Source of the DNA: Marsupella aquatica
Lineage: Eukaryota > Plantae > Marchantiophyta
Length of the DNA: 64,000 nucleotides
Reading direction: 5' to 3'
NCBI GenBank assembly: GCA_973895155.1
Contig: OZ316898.1
Location: 19,603,292 to 19,667,291 of the forward strand
Shown here: positions 3,441-35,329 of the stretch, one piece after another
Layout of the letters: every line of letters begins with the position of its first letter
Position numbering within the stretch: position 1 is the stretch's first letter
The notes under the pieces: generated by a model
What the model saw: only the letters and a program-made list of their open reading frames with translations
The model's database searches: none
What the model was told of the DNA's origin: nothing
Made by a program: the position numbers and the translations under genes

Positions 3441-3535
3441 TTTTAATGACACTTTTTAGATTGTTTTGTTTATTAGTAACAGTGAGTAAAGCTTTTAATG
3501 ACACATTTTTTAGATTGTTTTGTTTATTAGAACAG
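3441..3535. repeat. About 52-bp AT-rich tandem duplication
   Basis: TTTTAATGACAC..TTTTTAGATTGTTTTGTTTATTAG..AACAG occurs twice. Confidence 0.85.
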
Positions 3536-3752
3536 GCCGGGCCGGGCAGGGATAGGCCGGGACAGGCCAGGGGTCGGGCCGGGAGAGGCCGGGGTTGGGG
3601 CCGGGAGAGGCCGGGAGAGGCCGGGAGAGGGTTGGGGCCAGGCAGGGCCGGGAGAGGCCAGGATAGGCTGGGGGTCGGGCCGGGACAGGGTTGGGGCAAG
3701 GTGTGAGCCAGCCGGGGCCAGGAGGTCATGGCCGGGCCGGGCTGGGCCGGGA
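3534..3752 (+). repeat. G-rich GGCCGGG minisatellite, potentially G-quadruplex forming
   Basis: Many GGCCGGG(A/C) units of about 10 nt with numerous GGG runs; shares GGGTCGGGCCGGG with about 62727-62802. Confidence 0.85.
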
Positions 3753-3968: not shown

Positions 3969-4091
3969 ATGGGGCTCAAGCATGGGAGAAAGCCCGAAAC
4001 ATTCCTCGTCAGATTTTTCCCTCTACTTCTTTGGTCAGTGGCTCGGATCATTATTGTAGCTGAAGTTGCAGCGGGCGCAGGCTTGGAGCTG
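3969..4091 (+). pseudogene. 5' half (signal/anchor peptide) of the split alpha/beta-hydrolase-like gene
   Basis: ATG at 3969 gives MGLKHGRKPETFLVRFFPLLLWSVARIIIVAEVAAGAGLEL (41 codons), which joins in frame to 27177. Confidence 0.85.
4054..4091 (+). repeat. 38-bp direct repeat, left copy (target-site-duplication-like)
   Basis: TTGTAGCTGAAGTTGCAGCGGGCGCAGGCTTGGAGCTG; one mismatch to 27139-27176. Confidence 0.95.
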
Positions 4092-4142
4092 TTCCCTCGC
4101 TGAATTTTTTGAAAGCGCCGCAAATGTTTTGAAGTTCCATGA

Positions 4143-5738
4143 ATGCATTTGCCGAATGTTGCAACTTTGAAAATTGGAGTTCCCTCGCTCAATGCGCGGA
4201 ATCTGAATTGGTTCGGATCTACATTCGCGAAGATGGCGTTTACAGGCAACATGTCTCCGCTGAACAATCAAGTTCTTCAGCATCCAGATCGACTCCGCTA
4301 TTCACCTGGTGAAGTTGTGATTCTGGACTCTCAGCTTCCTGAAGCCGGAGTCGACATACAATTGCCAGTTCCAGCAATGGCCATAGGCGGCAATAATCGG
4401 AAGCTCTTGCCACAACATCTCGCACACATTGTTGATTGGTTGGAAGTACCTGAGAACTTTGCCATGCTGAATGGGACGAGTAGTCGGCCGTTTGTCACCC
4501 GTAAACATCCTCCGAAGAAGACAGTGTTCAAAAAAATGCTCATCGACCTTCATGACGCTGGGTTCCCCAAATTTGTGACAACAGGCGATAACCTTGACAA
4601 ACGGTCTCAGCGTTTCATCAAAAAATACAAGGAGGCACTAGCGATAAAGCGAGACTGTGGTGCTGGATTGACAGATGCGGAGTTGAGGCAGGGTCTTACT
4701 CTGGCCAATAAGTATGAGAAGATTTGCCCTCATTTTGAGCGGATGCATGCCATTTATGGGGAGAGGGCGAAATGTTTCACCTCCGAGCACAATCGCTGCT
4801 GGTCTGCCAGGTCACCGTGAATTGTATGTTGACAAAGGATCTGATGATGACGAGGTGCCTCAATCCGAAGTGCCAACTCAAGATCCCCTAGATTATAACA
4901 ATTTGCGTAAGTTCAAACTTTAAATCCCTCAAATCCTCAATTCTTGAATTCTTGAATTCTGAAAATTTACATCTTCTACAATGTGGGAGCGCAAGTTATT
5001 TAGGCCTTTCAATTGTATCATGTTGCAGGTGATGAAAATTTTGATTTTGCTCAAACTCTATCGGACGATGACGTCGATGCCTCTGATGCTGCTGCGGGCT
5101 TCAACAGCGTACCTCAAGAACCAGTCCTTCCCACACCAGGTGACAACCAATCACCCCCTACATCAAGTCAACCTACTGTGGAGGAACCAATGTCCACTCC
5201 AACACCCACAAGGTCACAAGGACAAAGCAGAGGCACTAACTCTACTCATGCAACTCCTACGAACTCCACTCATGCAAGTCCTATTGTCACTCAGGAACGA
5301 GGTGCCCAACGACCCAGACAGGGGAAGAGGCCATCAGCCACACAAACCTCGTCAAGGCCCAATCTTGCTGAGGTGTATGCTGAGAAATTGGCAGAAAAGA
5401 ATGCCTTTAGGATTCAAATGATTGATGCCAAGGACAGATGGCGCGCCCAAGAAATTGCAGATCGGAAGGAGGCCAGAGAAGCAGATGCCGCGACATAGAA
5501 GGCTATGCTTGATGCCCAATCTGCAGAAGTGGCAAGAAGAGAACGGGTTCAACGCAAACAAGAGGAGAAACGAGTCAGAGTTGATATGACTCACTAGCTT
5601 GCTATTATCAAGGCGCAACAAGCCACAGTCTTGTTGACTGAGCTTGTAAGGCAAAATCGGACCGCAGAGCAGTTTAGGGAATTCAAGGCCATTATCGACG
5701 AAGGGGCTACGTTTATCCCCGACTCGGTTGGCCCATAA
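4143..5738 (+). pseudogene. PIF/Harbinger-associated Myb/SANT-like protein, disrupted
   Basis: IVDWLEVPENF...KKYKEA...GAGLT...YEKICPHFERMHAIYGER, then a low-complexity linker and a coiled-coil C-terminus. +1 frameshift near 4770, GT..AG intron about 4907-5028, in-frame TAG at 5496 and near 5595. Confidence 0.7.
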
Positions 5739-5857
5739 CAGTTCTGCAATTATGGTCAATTGTGTTGGAGTATGACATTTTATTCCATTTCTGACATGGA
5801 GTTATTTACAAATGCTGTGGCACATTTCCCACTTCTCCCCGTTGTATTCCTACTTCA

Positions 5858-6201
5858 TGTTGAGCATAGACGACATTCGTAACGGCAAGCCCATGAACCA
5901 TCCAACGCACAAGAGTCGACACAGAGAGATACGTGGTTCACCTCCACATGAGGCTACGTCCACGGGAACACACAAGAGCTTTACTGCACTCTAGGCCGAC
6001 CGGCCATACCAAGCATCCATAGCACAAGCTCTCTCTATCTCTCAACTAGCTCTATAAAAATGAGCCTTTATTCCACCAGGGTCTGGCATCAGCCCTGGCT
6101 ATATGCACAACAGCACTACCGCTAACCTTAGCTAGGTCCTAACCTGAGTTAGCCTAACTATGGTTAGCAAAAGAGTCACAAGACTAGAGCAATATCTAAC
6201 A
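5858..6201 (-). repeat. 3' LTR of copia element 1
   Basis: TGTTGAGC...TCTAACA; about 10 substitutions relative to 12129-12472; adjacent PPT (minus strand TCAAGGGGGAGTT, 6202-6214). Confidence 0.95.
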
Positions 6202-6408
6202 AACTCCCCCTTGACTCTTGTCTTGGGGACTGGACTAAATGCTACCATATGGAATCCTCAGCGGGAAGTTCTAGACAATCACCAAACCAGGTCTCCCCCT
6301 AAAAACCACAAGGGTTAACTAAGGGTTAACTAGAACTAAGCCGTAGCCTAACAGGAATGAGTAATCCATATACAAATAGTCACACATTGCTAAATAACTC
6401 TACTTGCA

Positions 6409-9400
6409 CTACAACTGCAAAACCTGCAAAGTAGCACGGTGTCTTGAGAAACTCTCCAAAGGAATCACTTTGGTAAAGGCATCAGCAGGATTGAGCTTTC
6501 CATCAATCTTGACTAGCTCAAAAGTTTTATCAGACACTGCTTGCCTGATAAAATGGTACCTGATATCAATGTGCTTCACCCTGCTATCCATCACCTGGTT
6601 AGCAGCCAAGTGAAGAGCACTCTGACTATCACAGTTTAGAGTCATTTTTCCATGCTCTAAACCCATCTTCACGATCAACTTATCCAACCAAATTGCTTCC
6701 TTTGCTGCTTCTGTTACTGCAACATACTCTGCTTTTGTAGTAGACTGAGATATGCACTTCTGCAAGGTAGATTTCCAACTGATACATCCTCCTCCAAGAG
6801 TGTAAACAAACCCAGTTGTAGACCTCCTGTATCCAGACAGCCTCCATAGTCAGAATCTACATAGCCAACCAATGTTCTATCTGATCTGTTATCAAATAGT
6901 AATCCATAGTCCTGTGTTCCCTTCACATACCTGAGAATCCATTTCACAGCTTCCCAGTGTACCTTCCCTGGATTTGACATGAATCTGCTAACCTTGCCCA
7001 TCGCTAGGGCCAAGTCAGGCCTAGTACAAGTCATCAAATACATCAGACTGCCTACTGCCTTCTCATACGGAATCTTAGCCATCAGACCTTTCTCCACAGC
7101 ATCCGTAGGAGAGAAAGCCGATGATAACTTGAAATGTGAAGCTAAAGGAATACTCACTGGCTTACAGTTCTCCATGTTGAATCGTGCAAGTACTTTCCTT
7201 GCATACTGGCCTTGACTCAAGCATAACTGTCCAGTCTCACAGTTCCTAAAAATCTCCATCCCTAAGATCCTCTTGGCCTTACCAAGATCCTTCATCCTGA
7301 ATTCAACACTCAATTTCGCCTTGAGACTGTCAACCTTAGATTGATCTTTAGCCACAATCAGCATGTCATCCACATAGATCACCAGAATGATGAAACCGAA
7401 TACATCATTCTTGACTGATTTCGTATACACACAAGGATCATACACCATCCTTGTAAAACCTTGAGCAAGCATGAAATCATCAAACCGCTTGTTCCATTGT
7501 CTGGGAGACTGCTTCAATCCATACAAGGACTTGAGCAATCTGCACACTAAGTTCTCTTGGCCTTTCTTCATAAAGCCTAGTGGTTGTCTCATGAAGATCA
7601 TCTCTTCCAAGTTGCCATAGAGAAAAGCAGTAACAGCATCCATCTGATCCATCACCAGACCAAAAAACACAACAAGCTGACACAAGATCCGAATTGTGGA
7701 ATACTTAGCTACCGGTGAAAAGACCTCATTGTAATCCACTCCTTTCTCCTGAGTGAATCCCTTGGCAACAAGCCGTGCCTTGTAGATCTTATCTCCACCC
7801 TCTGAAGGACTGTCCTTCAACTTGTAAATCCACTTGCTGTCCACCACTTGCTGACCTCTTGGAAGCTCCACCAGCTCCCATGTCTTGTTGTCACTCAAAG
7901 ATTGCAACTCCCTCTGCATTGCTGCATTCCACTCATGCTTCTGCTCTAAAGCACAAGCCTCACTATACAAAGAAGGCTCTCCTTCTTCCAAGATCAAAGC
8001 CATATCATCTTCATCAGGTGCAATGTCAATATCATCTAGCTTAGATGAGTCTGCCCGTTGACCATACCTGGTAGGAGCTCTAGTAGAACGACTGGAAGTT
8101 CTTCTAGTAGATGACTCAGGCTGATCTGCTGCTGCTGCTGCTGGTTGAATTTGAGGTACCCCAGCAACAATCTGCTCCTCTTGTTCCATCACAGAAACCA
8201 GCTCCAAGCCCGAAGCTTCTCCATCTCTCCTGTCATGAACTGCATCATGACTAATCTCCCCCTCAACCCGGTCCGGGATGGGAGATTTCCCCTTGTCAGT
8301 ATGGGAGTCCTGAGAACTCTCACCCTCCTTTGATGATCTGGATTCATTAAAGGACACATCTCTACTGACAATTAGTTTACAAGTTACTGGATCCCATAAC
8401 CTATAACCCTTAACACCTTTCTGATAGCCAAGGAAAATGCACTTCTTCGACTTGGACTCCAGCTTGGATCGAAGCTGGGAAGGTGTAAGCACATAAGCAT
8501 CACATCCAAAAATCCTCAGATGTGAGTAATCTGCTGGACGCCCGTACCTCATTTCAAATGGCGTCTTGAATCCAATAGAACTGGATGGAGAAAAATTTAC
8601 CAAATAAGCTGCAGTGTTGACAGCTTCAGCCCAAAACTCATGTGGTAAGCATGATTGACTCAATATACTCCTCGAGCGGTCCAATAGTGTTCGGTTGAGT
8701 CTCTCAGAAACACCATTCTGCTGAGGAGTATAACTTGTTGTGAGATGACGAGTAATCTCCTGCTCCTTACAATACGTTCCAAATTCCACGGAATTGTATT
8801 CACCGCCGTTATCCGATCGAAGATATCTCACCTTATTACCAGTCTGATTCTCAACTTGGGCTTTCCACTCCTTAAAAGTGGCAAAAACATCAGACTTATT
8901 GTGTAGAAAGTATATCCACACATACCTTGAGTAATCGTCTATGAACGTGACATAGTATAACCGTCCAGAATGTGAGGGAGTAGGGGCTGGACCCCACACA
9001 TCACTATGTACATACTCAAGTACCTCCTTGCTGGTGTGAGTTCCAACTCCGAAGGGTTTCCTGTGCTGCTTCCCTAGCACACAGTGCTCATAAAATTCCA
9101 ACTTACAAGATTGCAAATTAGAAAGTAATCCTTTCTTCTGAAGAATAACCAAACCTTTTTCACTCATGTGGCCCAAATGGAAGTGCCACAGCCGGGCCGT
9201 CTCCTCATGAGATAAGGTTACATTGGCTTTATCACAAACTACACTGCCCTCCAAAACGTATAGATTGCTATGTCTCTTTCCCTTCATTACAACTTTAGTA
9301 CTAGTTGAAACCTGAAGGACACCATTAGCAGAGCTCCACTGATGGCCATTTGCTTCTAAAACTCCAAGTGAAATGAGATTTTTCATCATGCTGGGAATAT

Positions 9401-9629
9401 GTCTCACATTCCTCAACGTTCTCACAACACCATCAAACATCTGAAATCTTACAGATCCAAGTCCAACAACTTGACATGGGATTCCATTTCCCATCAACAC
9501 TGACCCGTTGGAAACCGTGTAAGAACTGAAACAATCTCTCCTAGAGCAAATGTGAAAAGTACATGCACTATCTAGAATCCAGTCATCTTTACCTGGATTT
9601 GACACTACGTTGAGAGCATAACTTTGACA
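6409..9629 (-). pseudogene. Copia pol (protease, integrase, RT, RNase H), frameshifted in RNase H
   Basis: WILDSACTFH, HSDVWGP, RSDNGGEY, GVKGYRLWD, YKARLVAKG, YVDDM, CDSQSA. 1-nt frameshift near 6828; integrase zinc finger reads YEHC instead of CEHC. Confidence 0.93.
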
Positions 9630-10742
9630 TCACAATATGTCATCATCATCGAGTAAATCTACCTCATGCGAGCTCGATGCCGCATTAGCAGAGGCAATAG
9701 GGACCTTTACTTGACAATCCCTTTTCATGTGGCCAGGCTTGCCACAATTCCAACATGCAAGAGGCTTCCTCTCTTGCGATTTCCCTCTGGATTTAGATCT
9801 CCCTCGTGATGTAGATCTAAACTTGTTCTGCCCATTCGTGCGCTGCGCTGCTCTTCCCCTGTTCATATTCAGCGTAGTGCCAGAAGAAGATGCTGTCTGT
9901 GATAGACCCAGCTTCTTCTGAGCATCATCAGACAGTAATGAGCTCACCACCTCATTATACGAAATAGACTTCAGATCTCTATACAAGAGAACCTGTTTCA
10001 AGCCCTGATAAGACGGCGGTAAGGAGCTTAGTAGAAGCAAGGCCTTATCCTCATCTTCAACTCCTTTTCCCAGGTTTGACAGATCCACCGCAAGACTGTC
10101 AAATTCATCTAGGTGATCCTGCATCTTGCTCCCTTCCTTGAGCCTAAGGCTCATCAAGAGAGACTTCTTGTACAGCCGGTCTGACGCATCTTCCCGGTAG
10201 TACTTCTCTCTAAGAGCCTTGAATAGTGACGCGCAATCCACATAATCATCCAGCTGCTTGATGATGTGCGGCTTGAGATATAGCATCACTGCATTGACAG
10301 CAATCACCTTCTTTTGTCTCCACTGTCTCAAAGAAATCTCCTCCTCTCCATCATACTGCTCTCGCAAAGAGAGCAGATGAGCTAAGCCCATGGCCCGTAG
10401 AACACCCTTCACTTGCTTCTCCCACAACAAGTAGTCAGTACGACCATTGTACTTCTCCACCTCAAACTTTACTCCTCCGAATCTAGCCATCTCCCTCTTC
10501 TTCCCTACTACCGATAGCTCTGGTAGTAACACAGCTTCCTCCACTGCATGCCACACCGGTGATTGTACCGGTGTCACTAGTTCTTCCTCAAATGGTAGCA
10601 GCTCCTCCTCAGACTCTCCGTCTGACCGTCGCGATCCTGAAGCTCCACCGACGCCAATTCTTCCAGTATCCTCCGAGTCACTCATCTTGGGAAACTCCCC
10701 CATTTTGACCACCTCGAAGAATAACCAAAATACCCAGTACAA
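9630..10742 (-). CDS. Copia gag
   Basis: MARFGGVKFEVEKYNGRTDYLLW (ATG at 10490), LLLSSLPPSY, zinc knuckle CWNCGKPGHMKRDC; ends at an in-frame TGA just before the protease. Confidence 0.9.
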   Translation of the reverse strand: MYWVFWLFFEVVKMGEFPKMSDSEDTGRIGVGGASGSRRSDGESEEELLPFEEELVTPVQSPVWHAVEEAVLLPELSVVGKKREMARFGGVKFEVEKYNGRTDYLLWEKQVKGVLRAMGLAHLLSLREQYDGEEEISLRQWRQKKVIAVNAVMLYLKPHIIKQLDDYVDCASLFKALREKYYREDASDRLYKKSLLMSLRLKEGSKMQDHLDEFDSLAVDLSNLGKGVEDEDKALLLLSSLPPSYQGLKQVLLYRDLKSISYNEVVSSLLSDDAQKKLGLSQTASSSGTTLNMNRGRAAQRTNGQNKFRSTSRGRSKSRGKSQERKPLACWNCGKPGHMKRDCQVKVPIASANAASSSHEVDLLDDDDIL

Positions 10743-12114
10743 CCCATCGTCAGAATCGCCATGTGATCGGTGCGCCGTGTTGCTAACTCCAGTGGCAACG
10801 TCCTCACCGAAAAAGAACCAAAAAAGTTACCGTTCGGCGGACAGAATCTTTGTCGGACGGCCAAAAAACAGCTCTCTATTTTTCGGGAATATTCCCGCAC
10901 AGTACAGCAGGTCTCACAGGGGGCAGTTCCCCCTGTCCAAGCGGTTAAAATGGAGGGCGGCAGGTCCCAGCACAAGGGACAAACTAATGAGAGGGAAAAA
11001 AGGCTAAAAATGGGCACTAAAGGGGGTGCTTAAGCCCCTTAAAGCCTAAAATACCCCGTAAAGGGCCGGGGGAACGAAGGGCGTATGGCCGGCGTCGGGG
11101 CGGGATGAGGGTACAACCGCGTACAAGCGGCGTAGAGCCGCAAAGGGCTGGGCATACGATGACAGGGCGGTACCGCGGCAACGACCGACACAGTATGGCG
11201 GAGGGCGTACGAGCGCGCAAAAAACGCCGGCCGGTGTTGCGCAGCTCGTTGCCGTGACTGAAGGATGAGGGGAAAACAAGGTGCAGGGGGGGTCGGGCGT
11301 ACAAGGGGAAATGATGGGGGACCAAGGGTCGGGAGGGTGTGTATACACACCAAAAGTGGCCCTAACCTAAGCCAAAATTTGACTTCATAACAAAAAAGCC
11401 GTTTACACACCTTGAACGCCGCTGTTTTAAGTGAGGAAAGTGAACGCCGCCGACGGGAAATGTTGCCGAATTGCATCGGCGCAGTCTACTGCTCCAACAG
11501 AATAAAAAAAAATTCCGTCGCGTCCCCTTCACTCCGCATCAAGTGCCAATCCCAGGCTCAAAACGACCGCCTCATCGCGATCAAACCGTTGAGCCGTAGC
11601 ACTTCGCGTCTCTTCCACCGAGTCGGACGTTACAAAGAAAATCCCGGTTCAGATGAGAACAAGCTCCATAGCTTGTGAAAAAAAAAACCTGAACGCCTCC
11701 GTCACTCGTCACGTCGCACTCGGTAACAACTCGGCAGCAATCCAGCTACTGAAATGATCAGCTTTGCCCGATCTACGATTTGAGCTAAAGGTTTGACGCC
11801 TCGCGCACCACAAAGCTCACACCGTCGAGAAAACGATCTCAGTTCCCCCCCAAAAGAACCATCGAAGAAAACCGTCGTACACGAATCACAAAAAATCCAG
11901 AACGATGGAAACGTGAATTCCTCCGCACCACAAACTCTGTTCAGAGATTTCTTTGCACCGTTGGAAAGCCCTTGCCCCGATCTATCCGTTGAGCCCAACA
12001 CCTCCAAGTTCCATGCGACAGAACTCCGTGAAATCCACCGACTCTAACCGCTGGAAAAACCGTCACCAACATGTCACAAAAATTTTGATCACCTTAACGT
12101 CACCTCCTAGGCTT

Positions 12115-12126
12115 GCTCTGATACCA
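12115..12126 (-). promoter_or_regulatory. Primer-binding site, tRNA-iMet
   Basis: Minus strand TGGTATCAGAGC, 2 nt from the 5' LTR. Confidence 0.95.
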
Positions 12127-12128
12127 CT

Positions 12129-12472
12129 TGTTGAGCATAGACGACATTCGTAACGGCAAGCCCATGAACCATCCAACGCACAAGAGTCGACACAGAGAGA
12201 TACGTGATTCACCTCCTCATGAGGCTACGTCCACGGGAACACACAAGAGCTTTACTGCACTCTAGGCCGACCGGCCATACCAAGCATCCACAGCACAAGC
12301 TCTCTCTATCTCTCAACTAGCTCTATAACAATGAGCCTTTGTTCCACCAGGGTCTGGCATCAGCCCTGGCTATATGCACACTAGCACTACCGCTAACCTT
12401 AGCTAGGTCCTAACCCGAGTTAGCCTAACTGTGGTTAGCACAAGAGTCACAAGACTAGAGCAATATCTAACA
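12129..12472 (-). repeat. 5' LTR of copia element 1
   Basis: 344-bp direct repeat of 5858-6201. Confidence 0.95.
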
Positions 12473-15300
12473 CTTCACACATATAATAAATTCACAGCAC
12501 AGATCGTAAATAATGGTACCAAAGCTCCATTTTTGACACACGTACAAGCAGTACCTGTCAAGTGCTTCACGAGTCTTGACAAGGTAAATCTCAGGTGCCG
12601 TAGGGGGCATCGACACTACGAGGTTGAATTACATGTGACATTCCCACCACGGCCCTATGAAACGCGTGGGATGGGAGGGAATCCAAGGCCTTTGAGGTGG
12701 ACATAAAATAGTGTGCTCAGCCATAGCCAACTCCACCATTTCACAATCCACCGACGAAGTGTATTTTGCATACAAAATCATAACATTTGGATTAAGACAC
12801 TATGTTCTTCTTTCTTTTCTTCCTTTGCGCAATGGCTCCTCAAACACGCTCGGCCAAAGCGAGTTCTAAGTTGGAAATTCCTCCAGTGCCAAGTCCAGAG
12901 CTGGCCATTGTCATAGGCTTGACGGGAGGCTTGAGCGACCACGATGAGCCAACAAAAAAAGAAGAGCAGCCTTGCAAAGCGATACCCATTCAATCACGTC
13001 GTCCAAGAGAAGAAGGTAGCTCTGAACATGAACAATTGTGGAGGACATTGCTACGTCCCATGACAGAAGAGACTCAGATTGGAGAGGGAGAAAGAGCAAG
13101 AAAGGGAGAAGGAAGCTCGTGAGCACTCCGACTAAGAGCAACACTCCGACCATGAGAAACACAACACTTTGGGTCCCTCTCTGTGAAGCAATGAAGCTCA
13201 ATGTGGCCGCATTTTGTACTTGCTTGTAGCGTTAGCAATAGTAGTAGTAGTTAGTAGACAAGCAATGTCTACAGTTAGCAATAGCAATAGTAGTAGACAA
13301 GCATGTGGTCCTAACGCTACCACTATGTTCACGCTGTATGAGCCTATAAACATTTTGCAATAATATTCGGATTCATTTGAAGCTTCCATTCATTGTGGAC
13401 CACGTACTTGTCCCTATTATATTGTGTATGTATACCATACTTCGAAGCAAGGCTTGCACACAAATTGCACACTTGACGTACTTGCAAAACAAGTTTCAAA
13501 ATTATATATCCTTTGGGTGTTACAAGGACGGCCTCTGCCAACTTCAACGCCTTAAAATACCCTAAGCCCCTTGCCTAGTGGGAAATAGCACGAAGTACAT
13601 GGGGCCTGGTAGCTATAAACTGCAAGGCAGAGTTCGAGCCTTCAAAATGCTACCTAAACCCTAAGCACACAACAAGCAGTCGGGCGTCATTACTCCTTCG
13701 AGTCTCCATTGACTGAAATCTTATGGCACTCCAACTTGTCTCCGCCTCTCTTAGAGCAGACCTCGTTGTTATCCACTTCCCCCGTCCCATCACCTTGTGT
13801 CAAGTTGCTTGACGTCTCCTCTGCAAAATCCTCAATCCTGATGACTGGGAGGTGCGCCATACAGGGCTGCATTCCCTCCAATCGTTTCTCCCTCCCAAAA
13901 AGTGCAGCCTCTGTGTGTATGTGGGCGAGCTTGCTCTCAACCTCCAAGACTTGCACACCACGAAATGTTGGGTCAAAATTTTCAACATCACCAAAAGTAG
14001 TCTGGAAGGAAAGACGAGGGCCCAATGGCCATGTGGGGAACCCTCGGATTGCAATCCACATGGATGCATCGGTTATCCCCCTCCCAACGTGCCATAGCTT
14101 TTGATTCTCCATTATTCGCTTTCTGTGTACACAAACAATTTGTGTGAGTGAATGAGACGCGAACATACAGTGATCAGACAAATGAGAACCAAAGTAAGAG
14201 GAGGGCCCATGAAATAAATATGGTGAGTCCACCAGGCGATGAAGATTACCAGTACTCGGCCTACTGCGTTTCCATTGACAAAAATCTGCCTGGGGCTCTA
14301 TTAAATGCTAGTGCATGGTCCATGACTTGCACTAGCAAGGCATTCCCTGCCTGTGATGTTGCTCGCCTAGTACTCCTTGGCTGATGTTCATTGTACGTCT
14401 GCCGGGTCTGCCTCGTCCGGCAGTGGTGCCTCCAATTCCTCCATTTGATCAGCTTCAGTCCATTCGTCATTCTTACTTATGACATAATTGTGCAGTTTAC
14501 AACAAAGGCCTATCCGTCAAGTTTCTTTTTTATGAATTAAGCCTTGATTGAAGGCCATCCAAAAATCTTGGGTTATCACACCCTACCCCCATGCCTACGA
14601 TTTAGATCACCTAATACCCTCGCTAATACCCAAGGGCAACCTATTACCGTTCGATGTCAACCGTAAGTTTCCCGCGGACGGTGCTATTTTACGCGCCCTA
14701 GGTTTTGGATACCATTTACACGGAGAATCATCGAGTAAGCTGCCAATGTTTTGGTTTTCAGCATTGTGCGAAGAAGATACCGTCGGGGCGAGAGACTTTG
14801 TGCAGTGTGAAGCACTGTGTTTTCCGCACCAGAGCTTTCAAAGTAGGGTTGTCGATTGATGTTTGCGGATTTGGTGACGGGGAGTGCGGAGCTGCGATTT
14901 GTGGGAGCGAGTTGTGGTGTGCGTAGGCTTTGACATTTTGAGAAGGGAGCTGAAAATCCTCTGTTGTTCGGCGTCAGTGTGGAAGGGAGCTGAAATTGCA
15001 AGGTGAGATGCTGACCCAAGTGCAAGTGTTCAACCTTTCTTGAATCGACGTTGGGAGGTGTTAGGATTTTCTGAAGAAACCCGCAAGTGTTCAACCATTA
15101 CACTGCATTGGCAATGCAATAGAGGTTCGCTACAAGCTTTGACCTGCTCAGCTGAATTTGCAATGCTGTTACGAGCCTTTAGTGACCTGAACTGAGCCGA
15201 CACCTATTGGTTTGCTTTTCGTTGCGCTGCAAGGTTAGCGGATTTGTGGATTGTAGTGCGCCTACTGTCATTGCACACCGATTGAGTTGCTTTCATTTGC

Positions 15301-15329
15301 ATTGAGATTGAGATTGAGATTGAGATTGA
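15301..15329. repeat. (ATTGAG)n microsatellite
   Basis: About 5 hexamer units. Confidence 0.9.
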
Positions 15330-16248
15330 CCTACGCTGACATTGCTGCGTTGGGCATCTATGAGATGCGACTTGCAGTGTGAGACGCACCAACATTAGTT
15401 TTAGGAGGCGCAGCAACCTCAGTTTGAGGCTCAGGCGACTTGACATGCGACTTGCAGCAGTTTCAGGAGGTGCAGCAAGATCAGTTTCAGGAGGTGACTT
15501 GAGATGCGACTTGCTGCTGCTGATCAAGTTTGAGACTTAACAGTGAGTTTAAATTCTATTGCAACCTTTGAGTTGGGCTACATTTGTAATGCTGCAAGGT
15601 TTGAGGTGACCTGTACTCAATTGAAGCCTGCCAACTGCTACGATGGTCAGTTCACTTGCGCTGCAAATTGCTGTGAGTTTTACTAGCTACAACTTAATTA
15701 AAATTTGTTATATAGGTGTTTGAGTGATCAGCGATTGATTGACTTGCGATGCTCACGCAAATGCAGTACCATAGACAGATTGGCCGTAGTAAGTTAATGT
15801 CGATTTGGCCCAGACTTCAGAGCTTCGTGATGAATTTCATGATTCCGGCATCCCAGGTAAAGGACGGCAGCCGAACAATGCTCCAAATCCAATCTTGCCT
15901 GATCACTTGAGTCCATAATGGACCTGACGAGAGTCTCACCTCATCTCCTAAGCAAAAAGGTGTAGTATATAGCAATCCTATTCTCATGTTTTAGCTCTAT
16001 CTTTCTATAATATTGCACTACTGATCATGTATGATATTTGGTTGGCTGGCATGGATTCACAATCAGAAAAGAAATGATCTACATCACATTGAAGAGCTTC
16101 CCACATGAGTTTTTCTCATTCAACCTTGGAGCAAGTATGCGGAGCGCCATGCAGTGAAGAAAGCCTGTGCTATTTGGCTCAATCTTTGTGGACAGTAGGT
16201 GAGTATTGGGATTCACTGGTAGGATCATAGTTAAGAAAGAAAGTACCA

Positions 16249-19200: not shown

Positions 19201-20223
19201 TCAGTTTTAGGTGATGTTCCTGTGATTTGGTTGTGCAGTTGAAATACTAGCTTGTTGACCCTTTCACTTGGCTTTTTCAGGTTGTATGAGGCTAAAGAGG
19301 AGGAACTAAGGAGAGCAAGAGAAGCATTTGTAGTACGCTATAATGAGACACGACTTCCACGCAGTAGCAGAACAGTGTCCCTTCCACCCGAACTTGCCTC
19401 AATTCCATTCGGAACCTGGTTCAGGGATCAGATTCACAGAGCTAACTTAGAGGAAAACGACGCTAGAATACTATTGACTGCAATCTCATTTCCTCCAAAC
19501 CAAAGGGCTCTCACTTATAATTCAATGAAGGCTTACGGTAACCATTATAGGGTAATGCGCTGTAAGGATAGAGATGGTCAATGGCGTGAACTGTCCCAAC
19601 TTAGGAGCACTGACTCGCAGGGCTATGCTACATTTGACTCTGGTGTTGCTACAACATTTCATGAGGAAAGGACAGGCCAAATAGGGGTGAATCTGGCTAA
19701 GCTAACTTATGTGGGGGTTTTGACTCAAATACTTGTGCTAGACTATGGCCCTTTACTTCGTTATGACCCTGCCATTATCCTAAAGGCAAAATGGGTGCGG
19801 TCTAATTGGGGACCAGAGAATAGAAATCCATCTATGAAACATGATGAGACGGGTCTTTGGCTAGCCAATTTTAATATGCCTTATCCTTCAGCAGAGAAAC
19901 TAGACTATGTTCTACCGAATCAAATTGAACAGGTTTTCTTCTATCCAAATGAGGCCAAGGTCTCTTGGAGACATGTGCTTCATAAGGAAGGAAGGTCTCG
20001 CAGAGTAGTTGAGGGTATAGAAGATCTGGAATACAATGATCTTAGACCTCGTCATGAGGCAGTCAAAGTTGGGCTTGTTGCTGCGGCTAACGTGGCTGTG
20101 CCTTTAGAGGATGGAGAGACCCTAGTTATTGTGCCAGGGGCGGTGCCCATGACAGATGATTCAAATGAGGATACTATAGATGATGATACTTGGGAAGATT
20201 CTGAGGATTCTGAGGAAGAGTGA
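16249..20223 (+). pseudogene. CACTA TnpD-like transposase (transposase-associated, Tnp2/Transposase_21, DUF4218- and DUF4216-like regions)
   Basis: IKCPC..C, KIHACEDGC, VLRHFPLIPRLRR, DGVNPF, YNLPPW, WTINDYPA, LDPMHTEKN, GLKSHDYH, WMYPIER. Frameshifts near 17265 (CATG duplication) and near 17568; introns about 18052-18227 and 19133-19280. Confidence 0.92.
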
Positions 20224-21480
20224 CAAGTGAACTGTTTGTTCCAGTGTTTTGATGCAGTCGTCATCAAAATCTGAAGGTGATGCAGAAGTTGGACTTCCGA
20301 GTGGGAATGCGTATGAGGCTTGGAGAGAGGCTAACATAGCAGCCAACAACGTTTACATTAAAGAGAATCTTAGAGATTCAATCATAGCAATTAATAGGTA
20401 CTAATAAGTCCACTTGAGCTTTTCTTTGAGTATTACTTTGTTGTTTACTTCTATGGATCGATCTACACCCCAATGTATACTAGTGGTTATTTTATCTTCT
20501 TATTACCAGTTGTGTACAAGGAACCTCACTTGGGGGAGAGAAAAAGAGACGTAAGAGTTCCACCAAGACATCACAAAGTGCAAGTTTATTGCCCCAAAGA
20601 AGGAGCTCAAGAAACATCGGGAGACATTTTCCAGATATGGCAGACAATGAGTCAGGAGGGAGTCAATCGCAAAAATCATCTGCTGCAGACTATGAAAATG
20701 AAGACAAGCACTATCTAACTCCCGTTCTAACTCAGAGGATGAGCAACTGGATGAGGTAAAGGCTAAATTTATTGTATCCCTTGGCCTGCCTTATAAAGGC
20801 CCTTGTTGTTATTGTTCAGAGTCATATGAGGGATAGAATTCTTCACACAAAGAGACAGTCTACCCAATTAAATGATGGATTATATGATTGATAAGTTCAC
20901 TTTGTTTTTCTTGTGATGTGTACATACTGTGGTATTGACTGTGCTATCATGTACAACTTTAACAACAGCCGAGTGGACACACAAGGCCAAAATATTATAC
21001 TGATCCTATCACTGGTGAAATCTCTTTGTGTAAGTCAACTCTGAGCCATTTTGCTCTCTAATTTGCTGTACTCAACTATTTATTGAAGTGCTCAACTATC
21101 TTTGGCAATTAATTATCCATAGCCCTCTGATCACTAAATGTTATATGTAAGTGTGGTCACTTATTGCCATATGTGATTAACACGTGATTTTTAACTAGGT
21201 TGTTTATTGTTGTAGTGACACCAATACCAAGGGCAACTGCAGCTAAGATACCCATGAGCAGTAATGTACGATACTTGGGGTCAATGCAGCGTCAGTCATC
21301 TAGACAGGCAAAAAAGCAATGGACGAGATAACCGAGGAACGAGTCAAGATGGGCATGAAGAAAGCATCAATCTCTGTATGTAATTTAATATTGTTCACTT
21401 AGATTGTTGATTTTCCTTGATTCTTCTCTTGCCCATTAGTGTCGTAATTGATACTTCCCCTGCCCTTGCTTTGTGTGCAG

Positions 21481-23711
21481 ATTTGGAATAACGATGTCAA
21501 AGACAAAGATCAATATAGGAAGCAATGGAGAGATGACCTGCGTGCTACTTGTATTGGTAGACTTGATCCTTTAGTGCGTGATATTAGGCAAGTAGATAAG
21601 AATGTGTTGTCACATGTCTATGATGTGATGACAAAGGATTGGCAATATGTAGATGGAACTTTGTCAATGACAAAATTCAGATCTCACTATTCAAAGGTAA
21701 TGAAGGGACAACGCGCGAGACTTCACAAGCATTTTGTGTCAAATGGGAAGCGCATGGACAAGAAACCACCTGAAAACGTAAAGCCTGAGCACTGGAAAAA
21801 CCTCTGTGAGTGGTGGCTATCCCCAGATGGCATTACCTGTACTGAGAAAATGACAAAAGCTCGCAGCAAAGTGGTAAATCCATCTCGGGTTGGAAGAGGT
21901 GGTTACCGTGGGAAAGAAGCTAAGTTAGTAAGTCAAACTTTTCTCTTGGCCTGTATGAGTTCATTTCGTCGCCTTCTGTAATTACTTGGTCAATAATTTG
22001 AACAAAATTAATTCTCCTAATTGTTTGCATCCATTTGCCGCAGAGGAAGAGAGGTCATAGTCCGGACCTATCAGAGTTGCAAGGTCAGCCTGTGGATGCT
22101 AGAAAACAGCGGACTGGTCAATCAGTCAGTCCATCAATGGCAAGTACTGATTGGGCCACACCTACGCATCGACAAGGGAGGAAGTCCATTGTGAGCATCT
22201 GAGTCATACTTTTTATTTGGGTTTACTTTTGACTTAGATTCACAACACTCAATTCTAATTAATATTTGCTTTCTGTTTCTTGCTTACAGACACCCTTATC
22301 AAAGACGGGGTCAGAGGATGTGCTTGAAACTCAGAGCCTTCTTTATGAGAAATTAGCATTGTCCATCAATTGTTCGATGATGGCTGGATTTGAGAAAATG
22401 ACACAATCATTGGTAAACACATTATCAAATGTCCAACAACCTCAGCTTCCTTCCTCTGCTTGGAATCCCAACTTGGATGCATACAATGGACCATTAGGAG
22501 CAGGTCAGAGTTCTCGATCAGGTGCACTTCCCCATGACATTTCAGTTATAGCCCCAAAAAGTAGAGGAAATTCAGCAGCTATCCATGTTGTGTCAGGTCA
22601 AAGTGGTTCAGGGCCTAAGACTTCAGCACAGAAGAGCTTGGGGTTTGAGCATGACGCAGTGGACCATTCAAAAGAAGGTTCCCCTCATGCTCCTAAAGAT
22701 TACAAGTCATCAGTGACAGGGAAGCTTGAGAAAGTAAATGCCACCAACACTATACAAGCAGTGAAAGATGCAGTGCTTGGGAAGAATGTGGAACAAACCA
22801 CAAAAGAAGATGAAAGCGGGATTTCTCCTCTTTCTGCTCCAAATAGAAGTAAGGTTAAAAAAACAAAAGGAAAGGTAAGATTCTTTAAGTTTAATTTTGC
22901 TGTAGAATGTTAAGTTCAGCCTTGTTTCCCATAGTCCTGGATGCAATGGCAGTGCAATTACAGTCCATTCTTGTGTGGCTTTTAGCTCTCTACTTTATTA
23001 CGAGTGATTAGAGTTTTGTTGGAAGTTGTTCTTCCATGCAACATAGTTCATCTAGAGATATTAACTTTCATTTGTTTGATTCTGAAATTCAGGTTGCAAC
23101 AGAGGTAGGGCCTCCTGTTGCTGATGACAAAGTTCAGGATTCCCAACAAGATTATCCAACCCCTGGCCGTAGAGTATCTGATACTGCATTGAAGACAGTA
23201 ACTTCACCAACGGTTCTCAAGGTGAGTTTTAGCTTATGGTTTAATTTCTCTTTTGCAATCATTTTGTATTGTGCAATATGGTGGGAATGGTGAGAACATA
23301 CAAATTGTTAACCTGTGCAGGATTTATTGGTAATTGAATATGCTAGCATTCTAACCTCACTGAATGATCACTAGTAGTCTTCAACTATCATCATTTGGCA
23401 CTACAGATTAATTATTATCCTTAATGATTTTCAATTTGCTTTTGTGACAGTTTAAGATTGGGGATGTGGTTAAATTGAAATCTCCCGTGGATCAGCAGAT
23501 TGTTGCACTTGCAACAGTGATGGGCATTTGGAAAGAAGATTTCTACTATGACAAGGAGATTCCAATTGGACATTTGATGGTGACTGCTAAGACAGTGCTT
23601 GAACCAGATACACCTCTGCTTGAGAAAGGGCACCCAGAGTCCAAGGTAGAATTCTTGAAGGATGTGGAGAACAAACCCTTTCTGTGGTACCAGAAGTTAA
23701 TGAGGAAATAG
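21481..23711 (+). pseudogene. CACTA TnpA-like (Ptta/En/Spm) multi-exon gene; further exons probably from about 20255
   Basis: PPENVKPEHWKNLCEWWLS...RSKVVNPSRVGRGGY; terminal exon KIGDVVKLKSP...VALATV...PFLW. Confidence 0.7.
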
Positions 23712-24224
23712 TTACTATGACTGTGCCATTGGAAGCAGTAAGTAAACTGAAAATCTAGCCCTTCTTGTTACGTTTTTGGAACAATTTGGATTGCTCAAGG
23801 CAGTACATAGCTTTATAGGATTGAGGCAGTAGTGAGGGCAGTAGCTCTATAAAATTGAGGCAACTTTACTGCAGGTAGTATGATTTATGGATCCTCTTCA
23901 TACAGGAAGATATCAAATATACTTTTTGTCATGTTTCAAGCTTTTTAGAAGCATTCCACCAATTCTATGAAATGTCTGCTCTGTGAATTGTGCATGACTG
24001 TTGTATCAAGCTTCCATGGCACAACCTAGCAAGTGGATTGTTGGTAGAATCACTACACAATCAGTCAGGATACACCTTGCAGGACTGAGCACAAATCTCA
24101 AATGTGTTTACAAAGCCATGACACAAATGACTCTAATTATAGTCATACTCACAAGTCACTATAGGACCAGTTATTACCCGTGTATTTGAGGTTCTAATAG
24201 CCATTCAAAAGCAACTTGAAATAA

Positions 24225-24650
24225 AGTCATACATACCATTCACAAAAGCACTCCTAAATCAGTCATCACATGCGCCTTACTCAGTTGTAAAAAGTTGTAA
24301 ACAAGTGACTTCAATTACAGTCATATTGGTCGCTCATAAAAACACTCCAAAACCAGTCATTCACTACATTTATTTGAGTTATAGGAAGCTGGAAACATTG
24401 ACTACAATTTGAGTCATACATATCACAAAAGCACTCCAAACAAGTAATTATCCACATCTTTTTCAGTTGTAGAAAGGTATGCAGAAATAACTCCCAGGCA
24501 GGTAAGTTGTATATATCATTCACAAAAGCAGCCCGGAACCAGTCATTATTTGCACATTTTTGAGTTTTAAAAAGGTGGGCAAAAATTACCCTAAGATGAG
24601 TTATATGTGTCATTCACAAAAGCACTCCACATTTAGTCGTTATCCACATT
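24225..24650. repeat. Degenerate tandem array of about 94 bp, 5 units (CACTA subterminal region)
   Basis: Core TCACAAAAGCACTCC recurs near 24240, 24334, 24423, 24520 and 24614. Confidence 0.8.
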
Positions 24651-24821
24651 TCTAAAGGACTCTTGAATTTCAGTTGTTGACTTATACCACTATGTGTCTG
24701 AAACAACATTTGCACCAATGCAACTTGTCTTTGTGCACTCAAAAGTTCAGTCGTAAATTGTCTGAGTTGACTTGAAATATAGTTGTTTTTGAAGTCATAA
24801 AAAACCAGTTTCCTACTAGTG

Positions 24822-25280
24822 GGTCTAGATTTACTTGCTCAAATGAATTCTGCGGGTTGGAGGAGCATGAGATTTGGGTCTAGATTATCTCGACCCTACA
24901 CTGAACAGTTACGATGTGAGTTGTAGATATACATATTCTTACTAGAAAAAAGAGTGAAGCTATGCGTACCATCCACTTGGGTCTAGATGCTGTTGATCCT
25001 CTTTTACTTGTAGATATGTTCTCAGAAAAAGGTTATTTGGGTCTCGACCCTATACAAAGAGAATAGCTAGAGATATAGATTCAACAACGGGTCAAAATTA
25101 TGTGGACCCTACATTTGGGTTGAGATAATCTCGACATAGATTTTTACATAGTAATTGATATACATTCAACAACCGGTCAAAACCATCTAGAGCCTGCATT
25201 GGGGCAGACGTGATCTCGACCCTGTAAAAATAGGTTTTGTACTTTTATAATACATCACCGGTTTACCTTCCCTGTTTGTG
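24822..25280. mobile_element. Terminal remnant of a second CACTA-like element
   Basis: Repeated TGGGTCTAGAT and TCTCGACCCT motifs in both orientations, ending ...CCCTGTTTGTG (reverse complement CACAAAC). Confidence 0.45.
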
Positions 25281-25599
25281 TAACTTGGTTATCACGGGTC
25301 ATTTGAATTTATTATATTGTAAAACTGATATTGTCTTATTCTATTTTTCATTGTTTATATTGTATATAATAAGAACACTTTAATTATTATCTTTTAATTA
25401 ATAAGTATTTATAATTGATAACTGAATTAATTAATAATTTGGGCATTAGAATTGTAATTTTAGACCTCAAAAATTGTATATTTGGCCACTAAAATGTATG
25501 CTTTTGGGGAACAAGTTATAGAATTTTTGGGGGTAAAATAATAAATTTGAAGGTCAACTTCTGGACTAGAGAAATTCCAGTTTTAATGAATAGGGTGAT

Positions 25600-26073
25600 C
25601 ATCGTGGCCTAGTCTATCCAGACAAACTGCAAGCTGCTTGATGATGGGGGCCTGGCTATGATGAGAATGGTTCTCAAATATGGGGTGAGATTCTATTTTG
25701 TCAACTAAGCCAAAGAATGTGGTTTTGTCCATCCTGGTAAGCTGCCTGCATAGTGTATCAGACAAGTTATGGAAGAATTGGGTAGCAAACTCATCTGACT
25801 TGCTGGTGACATGTCTAGGAACAAAGAACCTGGTGTTGTACATGACAAAGAACGCTCATTAAACCTGATGCAAAATTCACTGCAATTAAATGAAAGCAGA
25901 TATTCTTCGTCTGCTGAACAATATATGACTCAATTGTATGCAATGAGAGTTAAACAATTCGGGCACAAATGTGCTTTACAATTCAGAATTGTGACTGAGT
26001 ACATATTGAAAACAAGATATCCCATCTAGTCGTCTAGGTCAGTATCTTTCAGAGCCTCTATCAAGTCAGCCAT
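25600..26073 (-). pseudogene. PIF/Harbinger transposase, N-terminal fragment
   Basis: CRQLTRMDKTTFFGLVDKIESHPIFENHSHHSQAPIIKQLAVCLDRLGHD fits the Harbinger pre-catalytic HTH region; truncated before the DDE core. Confidence 0.75.
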
Positions 26074-27122
26074 AATTGTTTTGGCACTCTTAGGCTTTGT
26101 GGGAGTGCATTCCCGAAATTCAGACCGTTTTGGTGTACCCTGGCTAGGTGAGTTGCCTATGCTTTTACCTAACTGGACCCCAGGGCTGCTTGTACATCCT
26201 TCATGAACAAATGCCAGGCATACAATGTGCAGCTCCAGGTCCTTAACTGAAAGCCAGACTTGCAGTTTAGGACATTTTTGCAAGACCTTCTGGACTGTGA
26301 CTAACTGCTGAGCTTCACCTAACAGGCTGAATGGCCTTGGCTGGATATTGAGAAGCACAATTGCCTGATCCTAGATTAGAGCTTTCAGTGGCGGGATCCA
26401 ACCGTTAACAGTATCAAACAAAATCAACTGGAATCAAAATTTGAGCTCTCCAGGGGCGGAATGCCCACATTTGTGACCAAATTCCAGGGACCTCTTACAA
26501 GCTACGCCAGGCTCCATGGGCTCGGTGCATGCTGAATAGGTGAACTTCCTTGGGAATGGGCTTCATGCCACATAGTTCCCTGCCTAGACTAGGGAGGGCG
26601 AAAATGACTCGGTTTTGCCACATTGTCTAGCGTACTCCACCTGCGAAAGGGAAGTCCAATCCCCCATTGCCTGGAATGGTAGCGTCAAACAAATGATCCA
26701 TGACGACAATGCATATACAAATAATATTCTTTGCTGAAAAAATTAAGGACTACCTTGGAATATCAGCGCAATCTGAAGCCACCATAAAGCACATCAGCCC
26801 TCTCACGCCGTGCGCCCTGATTCACTCCCTGATGGAGCCGACAATGCAGCGATGTGTGAGTCTATGCTCGGCTGGAACGTGCGCGGAGCTTCGCTGATTC
26901 GAATTCCTGCAGTGTGAAAAGGTCGAGGCCGCTGACTCGACGACTACTCTGCGCGGCGGATCGTTCGTAAACCCTATACGTTTAACCAGGGTTAATTGCG
27001 GTCAGGCGGGGGTTTCATGGCAATTTCCCGTGCGTGACTGGTCGGGCACCAATTGTGGTGCCCCACCAGTCATGTCCGGAGTTCCGGGCACCGATACTCC
27101 CGGGCGCTCAAATATCCCGCCA

Positions 27123-27130
27123 TATATAAG
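27123..27130 (+). promoter_or_regulatory. TATA-box-like motif at the right end of the large insertion
   Basis: TATATAAG after a GC-rich segment, 8 nt before the right direct repeat. Confidence 0.5.
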
Positions 27131-27138
27131 ACGCCCTC

Positions 27139-27176
27139 TTGTAGCTGAAGCTGCAGCGGGCGCAGGCTTGGAGCTG
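27139..27176 (+). repeat. 38-bp direct repeat, right copy
   Basis: TTGTAGCTGAAGCTGCAGCGGGCGCAGGCTTGGAGCTG. Confidence 0.95.
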
Positions 27177-28155
27177 GTGAGCCCGGCGCCATGTTCCTGC
27201 AGGGATCCACTGTCGGATCCAATTCACGGAATCCATCATGGACACGACGTCGTATGGCAAATTCCGTCCCACCGCAAAGCTGTCCTGCTCTTCGCACACG
27301 GATATGGCACGGACGCGTTCGTATACTTCGCTCCAGGACCCAACTGTGAGCAATGCTATGGATTGCCTGAACATCGGACCGTAGTCCTGGAAGCTCTCCG
27401 GAGACGGTATGCTGTCATAGTAGTGTCGGTCGATGCCGCAGATATGGAAGGCGCCGACGCGGCCATTGTGTATACCGTCGTTAAGGAGTGGATGGCAGAG
27501 CACATGTTGGACAGCCTGCCCTTGGCGGTGTGGGGTCATGCTTCAGGGACCTATCTCGCGACGGCTCTAACCCTGAGCCTTCCAATACAGGCGATGGTGC
27601 TCATGTGTGGCGAAGGGATCTTCGAAGTGGAAGAGGTGGCGACCCCGCTAAGTTTTCCACCAACGATCTTCGCGTACATGCCTGTTGATGAATCCGATCG
27701 ATTCTTTGAACCACACAGGAAAGGCCAAATCAGCGATGGCGGTCCTCAGCTTGCTTGGAGTGAAAGTGGCTGACACAGAGCTTTGGCCGAAGCCGCTTTC
27801 CCCGCTCTTCTTCACGGAGCGCATTCTGTGCATGAGCGAGGAGGTGTCACGGGCGATCTATGCGGCTTATGAAGCTGCTGGATGGATAGACGCCAATGGG
27901 TATCTCACGAGAGACCCAAGCCAGGAGGACTGGCAATCCGTGTTACTGAATGCTAAAGCGCTGCCCTTATGCCGGTTTGGGAATCTTTGCCTAGGTGCTC
28001 AAGTGGAGCAGGAGCTGAAGATGGCATTCGCTATGCACTCGTTCACGAGCGATGGTAATGGCGTGATTTTTCCTTGGCTGGACTCGACCATTAGCTCTTC
28101 TTCTAGTGGTGAAGCATCAATTCTTGAATCTCCCGCACTCACTGCAACGATTTGA
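27177..28155 (+). pseudogene. 3' part of a plant alpha/beta-hydrolase-fold gene, intronless and frameshifted
   Basis: VVWQIP..KAVLLFAHG...CEQCYGLPE...LPLAVWGHASG...FPPTIFAYMP, +1 frameshift at about 27685-27720, then PLSPLFFTERI...IDANGYL...VEQELKMAFAMH. Family recognised from recalled motifs, not from a search. Confidence 0.8.
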
Positions 28156-34400: not shown

Positions 34401-35329
34401 TATTTTCATTATTTTTAGTGTAATTATTATTATGCCATGTTCTCACAAAATATATGCCACTATGATACAGAGAAGTACTAAAAACACTATGTAGTTATTG
34501 GCCCTTTGCACTTCCTTGGGTTTTGGGTTGTTTTATGCTCTCTGTTTGATACTTTGTTCTTTTGCAGAGTTATATATATATATATGCCCAGTTTGCTAGC
34601 ATAGGACTTAGATCCCCTCTCCTAGTTGAGTACAGTCAGCTCATAATAGGTCTCGTTATGAGCAGTAAGTCATGAATCACTAATATTAAACATAGATAGT
34701 GTAGGTTGTAAAATGGTTAAATCCATATTAAAGGTGACACATTTGTGCCAGTGGCATGACTTTGTAGTAGCTCACTTGAGTAGAGACTGATCGGTCTTGT
34801 GGTCAATTACTGTGGCTGACTCTTCCCTTTTCTTGGGGTTTCACAGATTACCCCTTTAGAAAATAAAAAATAAAAAATTTCTCAATTTAAAAAAGTTGAC
34901 ACATTTGTTGTGGAAGATTGATCTCCAAGAGGGCAAGGAAATTTGGGTAGGGAAACCTTTTACCTACAAAGTGTTTGAATACCAAGGTTTTTGTTGGAAG
35001 CAAAACTTGCACCTCAATGCCAACTTGTATGCAAATGAGTATCTTGCATTGGTGCGGACATTGGTGCTATTCAACAGTGCGCCAAAAACCATGCAATGTA
35101 TATAACATTGCCAAAGAACCCAAGAAGACCCAAGAGCTAGAAAAAGCCCAAGAGTATGTGTCCCAGTGTATTCTGCCTTAGATTGAATTCTGACTCTAGT
35201 CTTGTAGCTTGAGAATTTGGTAGCATGTAGCGAAAAGACCTGATTTTGACAATTGCTTGTGATAACCATGTTGTCAATTAGCCAAAGGGTCCACGAACTA
35301 ATTTTTCAGTTTGACATGCTTTTCTAATC

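Follow-up and report, generated by a model that had tools for sequence, protein, structure and literature searches.

We analyzed a 64,000-nucleotide stretch of the genome of the liverwort Marsupella aquatica (contig OZ316898.1, positions 19,603,292 to 19,667,291; hereafter the window), in which the two parts of a host gene lie 23 kb apart, each bordered by one copy of a short direct repeat. Very probably, a single gene for a secreted, α/β-hydrolase-like protein was split in its N-terminal coding region by a two-gene DNA transposon of ~6.3 kb of the PIF/Harbinger-Pangu (PHIS) type, which was later swollen to 23 kb by a Ty1/copia retrotransposon and a CACTA-bearing block, and the split gene subsequently decayed by a frameshift and an altered GxSxG motif. 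A preliminary description of this DNA had taken the 23 kb for an insert without ends or enzyme; in fact, three known transposons are stacked, in quite ordinary fashion, inside a dead copy of the gene. The remaining interest lies in the pair of junctions, which combines a perfect terminal inverted repeat (TIR) joint, a clipped end and a target duplication of 13 times the usual length for the family.

One host gene in two parts

The 5′ part of the host gene (3969-4091, plus strand) is an ATG-started frame of 41 codons that ends in ...VAEVAAGAGLEL and has the appearance of a signal or anchor N-terminus. Its translation aligns with the N-termini of the paralogs P0001-P0007, with which it shares a basic start, a hydrophobic stretch and then the residues V-x-A/V-E-A-A, and its DNA aligns with the 5′ end of the paralog at locus L002. 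These paralogs continue unbroken from the N-terminus into ...PCS-x-x-DP...HGHDVVWQIPSH, which corresponds to the start of the gene body in the window (27177-28155, plus strand). Two frames make up the body (27030-27773 and 27685-28155), and a frameshift, on which the preliminary description is silent, separates them near 27715. The frame across 27138-27773 reads LVAEAAAGAGLELVSPAPCSCRDP.... A search with the body matched Calypogeia fissa proteins only (54-69% identity), which form a family with lengths of 356-362 residues, and tblastn of the paralogs against the window aligned the body at 65-69% identity in two frames. At least six intact paralogs of 359-362 amino acids show the order of N-terminus and body that is restored by removing the insert and one repeat copy, as read from alignments of the two halves as separate pieces. 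The gene for P0001 is a single exon (L002, 10001-11080). That one host gene was split by the insert, as the preliminary description had proposed, is thus borne out by C. fissa, where single-exon relatives carry both halves uninterrupted and join such an N-terminus colinearly to such a body.

The flanking repeat is real. The segments 4054-4091 and 27139-27176 share 37 of their 38 positions, the very match reported in the preliminary description, and they were recovered by direct comparison, by a repeat search and by self-BLAST of the window (E 6.6e-11), where the 38-nucleotide (nt) pair is among the few long-range matches. The two copies share one reading frame: the left copy closes the 41-codon frame, and the right copy leads into the long frame that reaches 27773. 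The repeat is the counterpart of single-copy coding sequence in the L002 paralog (stretch ...cagctgaagctgcc...gagctg); it is thus host coding sequence that normally occurs once, and the two halves belong to one gene. Counted from the transposon terminus, the duplicated host segment measures 39 bp (4053-4091 on the left and 27138-27176 on the right, 37 of 39 positions identical), a figure that assumes the T at 27137 to be the last base of the transposon. The mismatch added in the 39-bp version is an A at 4053 versus a C at 27138, and the duplication opens with ATT in the left copy (4053-4055) and with CTT in the right copy. At the internal mismatch, the right copy retains the C that is found in the L002 DNA, which indicates that it is the left copy that has mutated there. 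The preliminary description had considered a duplication of this length foreign to the elements of the insert, and indeed 39 bp is not the normal product of any element inside it.

We examined which fold the host family is likely to adopt. A PDB sequence search and NCBIfam gave no match for the family, and the Abhydrolase_6 score of 24.6 bits lies under the Pfam cut-off of 26.3. An AlphaFold model of P0001 is of medium confidence (predicted local distance difference test 60, predicted template modeling score 0.62), and its structural matches in the PDB are exclusively carboxylesterases, lipases and other α/β-hydrolases. Judged from this model, the proteins of this secreted, single-exon, Calypogeia-type family are α/β-hydrolase-like. 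The nucleophile elbow GxSxG reads GHSAG in all paralogs and GHASG in the window copy, a departure from the motif that fits decay of the split copy.

Two further features lie near the gene parts. An in-frame ATG at 27072 would, as predicted from the frame, yield a hydrolase body devoid of the signal. Upstream, ~270 bp from the hydrolase start codon, a GC-rich minisatellite (3535-3700) is composed of GGCCGGGAGAGG-like units of 10-12 nt.

The outer transposon

Three pieces of the insert carry Harbinger DNA. The left arm (4092-5857, plus strand) is truncated, has no TIR and contains an accessory gene in two open reading frames (ORFs), 4143-4820 and 5013-5498. The ORF 4143-4820, located beside the left junction, has four relatives (P0014-P0017), one of which (P0017) is a C. 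fissa protein; at its locus (L001), a DDE_Tnp_4 gene lies convergent to it. The same two genes are found in a second C. fissa relative (L003). In both loci the accessory homolog sits beside the DDE_Tnp_4 gene within the TIRs, and the two window ORFs are homologous to P0017 and to its L003 counterpart. The middle piece (12478-14513, minus strand) holds a stop-containing remnant of the C-terminal part of the transposase (14276-14513, minus strand), which was recognized by tblastx and tblastn comparison with the L001 transposase and with DDE_Tnp_4 proteins from Riccia and C. fissa. The third piece (25601-27137, minus strand) comprises an N-terminal transposase remnant (25601-25852) and the complete right arm, which ends in a TIR terminus at 27137 recognized by its match to L001 and L003. 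Both remnants are of the DDE_Tnp_4 type, as confirmed by tblastn with the C. fissa and Riccia transposases, in which the remnant 25601-25852 shares 57-61% identity with P0051 and P0053.

Against L001, tblastx aligns the accessory gene at 4398-4851 and 5337-5477, followed on the minus strand by the C-terminal part of the transposase (14258-14520) and then by its N-terminal part (25601-25852). The accessory ORF and the two transposase parts have the order and orientation seen in L001 and L003, and this colinearity identifies the outer element as a Harbinger-type transposon. Its own DNA amounts to ~5.3 kb when the copia element and the block 14514-25600 are subtracted, and to ~6.3 kb with the narrower of the CACTA candidates described below; the elements of the two relatives are 6.9 and 6.8 kb long. 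No DDE catalytic core is detectable in the Harbinger transposase, which is a pseudogene. The accessory ORF has no Pfam match; in a protein atlas, it is linked to Myb/SANT families by scores of no more than about 0.8, a weak lead. The earlier statement that the insert contains no recombinase gene has to be withdrawn, as it holds the Harbinger DDE_Tnp_4 remnants, a CACTA transposase of the tnp2/DUF4218 type and a copia integrase.

Elements nested in the insert

The Harbinger DNA is interrupted twice. A Ty1/copia retrotransposon (5858-12472, minus strand) is bounded by long terminal repeats (LTRs; 5858-6201 and 12129-12472) that are 97.1% identical over 344 bp, start with TG and end with CA. It is flanked on both sides by the 5-bp target-site duplication (TSD) CTTCA (5853-5857 and 12473-12477), and its gag and polyprotein, encoded on the minus strand (6714-10742), contain Pfam gag, integrase and RVT_2 domains in the gag-integrase-reverse transcriptase order of Ty1/copia elements. 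The copia element is a clean nested insertion within Harbinger DNA.

The second interruption is a block of the plus strand (14514-25600) that lies inside the Harbinger transposase gene, flanked by the two transposase halves, and bears a CACTA element with transposase ORFs at 16249-20223, possibly extending to 22913. Pfam identifies a plus-strand tnp2-type transposase with Transposase_21 (17572-18060, E 1e-28) and DUF4218 (18126-19136, E 5e-33), together with weak matches to Transpos_assoc and Transposase_24. We considered two pairs of candidate termini. For the pair 14813/24956, the TIRs match at 10 of 13 positions and the TSD AAG agrees, which is near chance expectation; for the pair 16214/24821, the TIRs match at 10 of 11 and 14 of 19 positions, and the flanking TSD is mismatched. 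A transposase first-D motif, 'VDGTH', can be read across the candidate CACTA site when its two sides are joined; its alignment score was no better than that of shuffled sequences, and we do not count it as evidence. Beside the 3′ side of the CACTA element are two arrays of short units (24220-24643 and 24865-25230). In one, a 15-nt motif occurs five times in direct orientation at ~90 bp spacing; the other consists of about six GGGTC...GACCC palindromic units, and one similar unit is present across the CACTA element at 14568-14594. These arrays may belong to a further nested, non-autonomous element.

The two ends of the element

A 5′-ANT-3′ target defines the Pangu group of the PHIS superfamily, in which TIRs usually begin with AG or GG, and the 3-bp target duplication is TWA in PIF and ANT in Pangu (PMC4482050). 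The relative L003 is of this Pangu type: its 19-nt TIRs are perfect and begin AGGGGGTCTC, and its target duplication is AAT/AAT. The left TIR of L001 begins AGGGCGTCTC. In the window, the right end, read as its reverse complement, opens at position 27137 itself with AGGGCGTCTT; its opening AGGGCGTCT is shared with the relatives. Over 27129-27137, this strand is identical to the first 9 nt of the left TIR of L001 (9/9) and agrees with the L003 TIR at 8 of 9 nt. The terminus at 27137 directly abuts the duplication, whose first host triplet, ATT, fits the Pangu ANT target. The terminal 9/9 match lies at the junction itself, the triplet that follows is CTT in place of the ATT of the left copy, and the right joint thus looks as if it had been made by the transposase. 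L001 itself has mismatched flanks (ACT versus TAG; 9441-9444 and 16355-16357), and its right TIR carries an 11-nt insertion; this relative may also have a disturbed end. The right subterminal region of the window element (27035-27135) contains an imperfect palindrome with 16-nt arms (about 27037-27075) and a TATATAAG box (27125-27132).

The left end is of a different kind. A terminus is recognizable on the right only, no inverted match above shuffle level exists between the two ends of the insert, and no second copy of the right TIR is found at 15 or more of 20 positions within the 64-kb window. The duplication is 39 bp rather than 3 bp long, with only its opening triplet being ANT-like. From the left junction to conserved points in the accessory gene we measured 306 bp versus 677 bp in L001, and 498 bp versus 1148 bp in L003, whereas the right-arm distances of 1285 bp in the window and 1240 and 1294 bp in the relatives agree within 55 bp. 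The left arm thus appears to be ~0.4-0.65 kb short, the element having been clipped on this side. Two candidates for a left TIR were rejected: a GGGCGTC 7-mer at 13682 is a chance match that fails upon extension, and the segment 4112-4126, suggested by MAFFT with ~10 of 13 positions matching the termini of the relatives, agrees with the right TIR of the element itself at only 9 of 16 positions. The preliminary description had seen no TIRs at the ends of the insert; this holds for the left end, and it fails for the right one, which is a Harbinger/Pangu TIR terminus.

Other kinds of element do not account for these ends. Neither end of the insert has a poly(A) or simple-repeat tail, in agreement with the earlier description as far as poly(A) is concerned, and the only reverse transcriptase in the insert is that of the copia element. 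We therefore rejected readings of the ends as those of a long interspersed nuclear element (LINE), a Helitron or a retrocopy, given that a tail and 5′-TC/CTRR-3′ ends are absent and that the hairpin at 27037-27075 lies ~60 bp away from the end.

Origin of the 39-bp duplication

How did a transposon of a family with a 3-bp target duplication come to be flanked by 39 bp? Our tentative answer is a half-canonical integration, in which one joint was made by the transposase and the other by host repair, with fill-in of a 39-nt stagger. The transposase would first have joined the intact right end at an ANT-type target, the host ATT at 4053-4055. The left end, lacking its TIR and some hundreds of base pairs, would have been incapable of strand transfer. 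The opposite target strand would have been broken 39 nt away, the resulting 39-nt overhangs filled in, and the clipped left end attached by host end-joining. The outcome would be a target duplication 13 times the normal length next to a clipped end. Taken together, the identity of the element and this mechanism form the best explanation that we can offer for the locus as a whole, and we hold it with a confidence just short of even. In age the parts agree with it, the duplication having diverged at 2 of 39 positions and the copia LTRs at 10 of 344. The junction pair is unusual and probably a one-off.

Several points weigh against this reading. Both junctions are known from the sequence of one assembly alone, and a single copy does not reveal whether the clipping occurred before or after integration. 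The triplet in the right flank is CTT and not ANT, which calls for one substitution, and the T at 27137 could belong to the host or to the transposon. The original left end is deduced from relatives that are only 40-60% identical in protein, no close relative of the element having been found. For the nested block, neither candidate pair of CACTA termini combines a good TIR with a matching TSD, and its insertion in situ is thus probable rather than certain.

A second possibility, which we consider unlikely taken by itself and yet nearly as likely as half-canonical integration, is that the element inserted canonically with a 3-bp ANT duplication and that its left end was repaired later; the single copy in the window cannot separate the two. 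Here, the joint between host and transposon on the left would have broken, perhaps through cleavage at one end during an abortive excision, and ~0.4-0.65 kb would have been resected on the transposon side. The host 3′ end, carrying the TSD, would have annealed to the TSD in the right flank, copied 36 nt and been end-joined to the resected transposon. Such templated 'filler' repair yields exactly the observed structure, including the clipped left end, and the copy is in register from the TSD onward, with a 4-nt match (TATT) there that could serve for priming. Templated filler is known from break repair in plants. It has also been documented at rearrangement breakpoints associated with mPing (PMC7584900). 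What speaks against later repair is that it requires a template ~6 kb distant and zero loss on the host side.

The preliminary description had favored the integration of a composite block of ~16 kb in one event by a non-canonical mechanism. More broadly, a composite of 16-23 kb containing the Harbinger and CACTA elements, with or without the copia element, might have integrated in a single event, for example through capture of an extrachromosomal DNA, either linear or circular, where a break had left staggered ends. We regard this as improbable. No TSD-proven boundary of the CACTA element was found, which leaves room for a joint arrival, and the divergence of the duplication (2 of 39 positions) and of the copia LTRs (10 of 344) gives no order of events. 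However, the gene order is colinear with L001 and L003 and not permuted, the right end falls precisely on a TIR terminus next to an ANT-like triplet, a place that a random break in a circle would miss, and the copia element has its clean 5-bp TSD inside Harbinger DNA. Nesting in place is the more economical history. A composite block is not needed in any case, as the DNA outside the copia element resolves into a ~6.3-kb Harbinger element and the CACTA-bearing block in its transposase gene. Of the non-canonical mechanism, it is the left joint that stands, the right joint being a canonical TIR terminus. Most likely, the primary event inserted one ordinary-sized transposon, with only the left joint being non-canonical.

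More improbable still is a scenario in which the host gene already contained a 39-bp tandem duplication, the Harbinger element inserted at the ATT between the copies, and a deletion then took away both the TIR and the TSD on its left side. Break repair often yields small tandem duplications, and the right copy does open with the presumed target triplet, now CTT versus ATT on the left. This course of events requires three independent events coinciding to the base, and such a duplication occurs in no paralog. We give least credence of all to an artefact, be it an assembly error or the false pairing of halves from two different paralogs: the overlap is 95-97% identical, whereas the paralogs share ~76% in DNA with an N-terminus that is unalignable by BLASTN, an assembly falsely joined at a shared 38-mer would contain a single copy and not two diverged ones, the right joint sits exactly on a transposon terminus, and the decay (the frameshift and 2.9% LTR divergence) fits an old, real insertion.

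Other features of the window

A second 39-bp direct repeat (37 of 39 positions; 31958-31996 and 34439-34477) flanks a non-coding insert of 2.44 kb that opens with a run of 10 G and closes with an AT-rich, (ATT)n-like tail. Its 3′ region is found again at 63160-63541 and, in inverted orientation, at 44352-44746. The insert has the look of a non-LTR retroposon flanked by a long duplication of the type made by target-primed reverse transcription, and its retroposon-like structure points to a mechanism distinct from that of the split-gene insertion.

The split hydrolase gene sits between the two copies of a segmental duplication (1-2717 and 38591-41294; 96.9% identity over 2.7 kb) that contains the 3′ part of a leucine-rich repeat receptor-kinase gene. 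The first copy ends at a short telomere-like CCCTAAA repeat (2723-2745), which is absent from the second copy. A further copia-like element (52400-57831) has LTRs (52400-52692 and 57541-57831) that are 99% identical and long open gag and pol frames (53145-54296 and 54423-57218), as judged from their translations only; it appears to be young.

Comparison with known systems

Gene disruption by nested transposons is routine, and what we describe is an ordinary gene disruption with an unusual junction, which is of modest interest unless more such copies turn up. If they do, they would show how plant cells resolve a half-finished DDE transposition, and they would warn annotators that filters on TSD length discard real insertions. 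It is conceivable, if rather doubtful, that Harbinger/Pangu elements in this liverwort genome recurrently integrate half-canonically, one end by transposase and a clipped end by host end-joining, with duplications of tens to hundreds of base pairs. If real, such a recurrent route would offer a record from nature of a eukaryotic DDE transposase integrating one end only. In a limited full-text literature search, we found no published case of a clipped Harbinger end accompanied by a long duplication.

The window element resembles PIF/Harbinger-Pangu transposons in its convergent arrangement of a DDE_Tnp_4 transposase and a second ORF that may be Myb/SANT-like, in a TIR beginning AGGG, in keeping with the usual AG or GG, in its size class of 6-7 kb and in the 3-bp ANT duplication present in its relative L003. 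It differs from the norm of these elements in having one recognizable TIR and a flanking duplication of 39 bp in place of 3 bp, and from intact members in that its transposase is a pseudogene with no detectable DDE core.

Aberrant PIF/Harbinger transposase reactions with filler DNA at the breakpoints have been documented for rice mPing (PMC7584900). In these mPing/Ping structural variants (PMC7584900), as in the aberrant or alternative transposition and the fractured elements known for maize Ac/Ds, the transposase acts on an end and host repair completes the reaction, and clipped ends, filler and non-standard flanks result. Most of the Ac/Ds and mPing/Ping cases concern a pair of linked elements or sister chromatids and lead to deletions, inversions or large duplications, whereas the window contains a single element with a short, in-register target duplication.

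Exceptionally long target duplications are described for R9 LINEs of rotifers (126 bp), for Dualen of Chlamydomonas and for some HERV-K LTRs; there, very long duplications are family traits in a few non-LTR elements and rare events in HERV-K (PMC9977147, PMC5488345). The likeness is that the length of the duplication equals the distance between the two breaks in the target strands and lies far above the family norm, and in HERV-K a DDE-type integrase is involved in the long-duplication cases, too. R9 and Dualen differ in being non-LTR retrotransposons with a long TSD as a family trait, whereas the window holds a so far single aberrant copy of a DNA transposon.

A tens-of-base-pairs direct duplication around inserted DNA, explained by fill-in of long overhangs, is also the hallmark that our locus shares with patch-mediated repair. 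In this model, said to go back to Vaughn and Bennetzen in 2014, break repair from staggered nicks reportedly gives rise to duplications flanking inserted DNA in plants. Patch-mediated repair needs no transposase, whereas the right joint in the window is precisely a TIR terminus at the target motif of its family.

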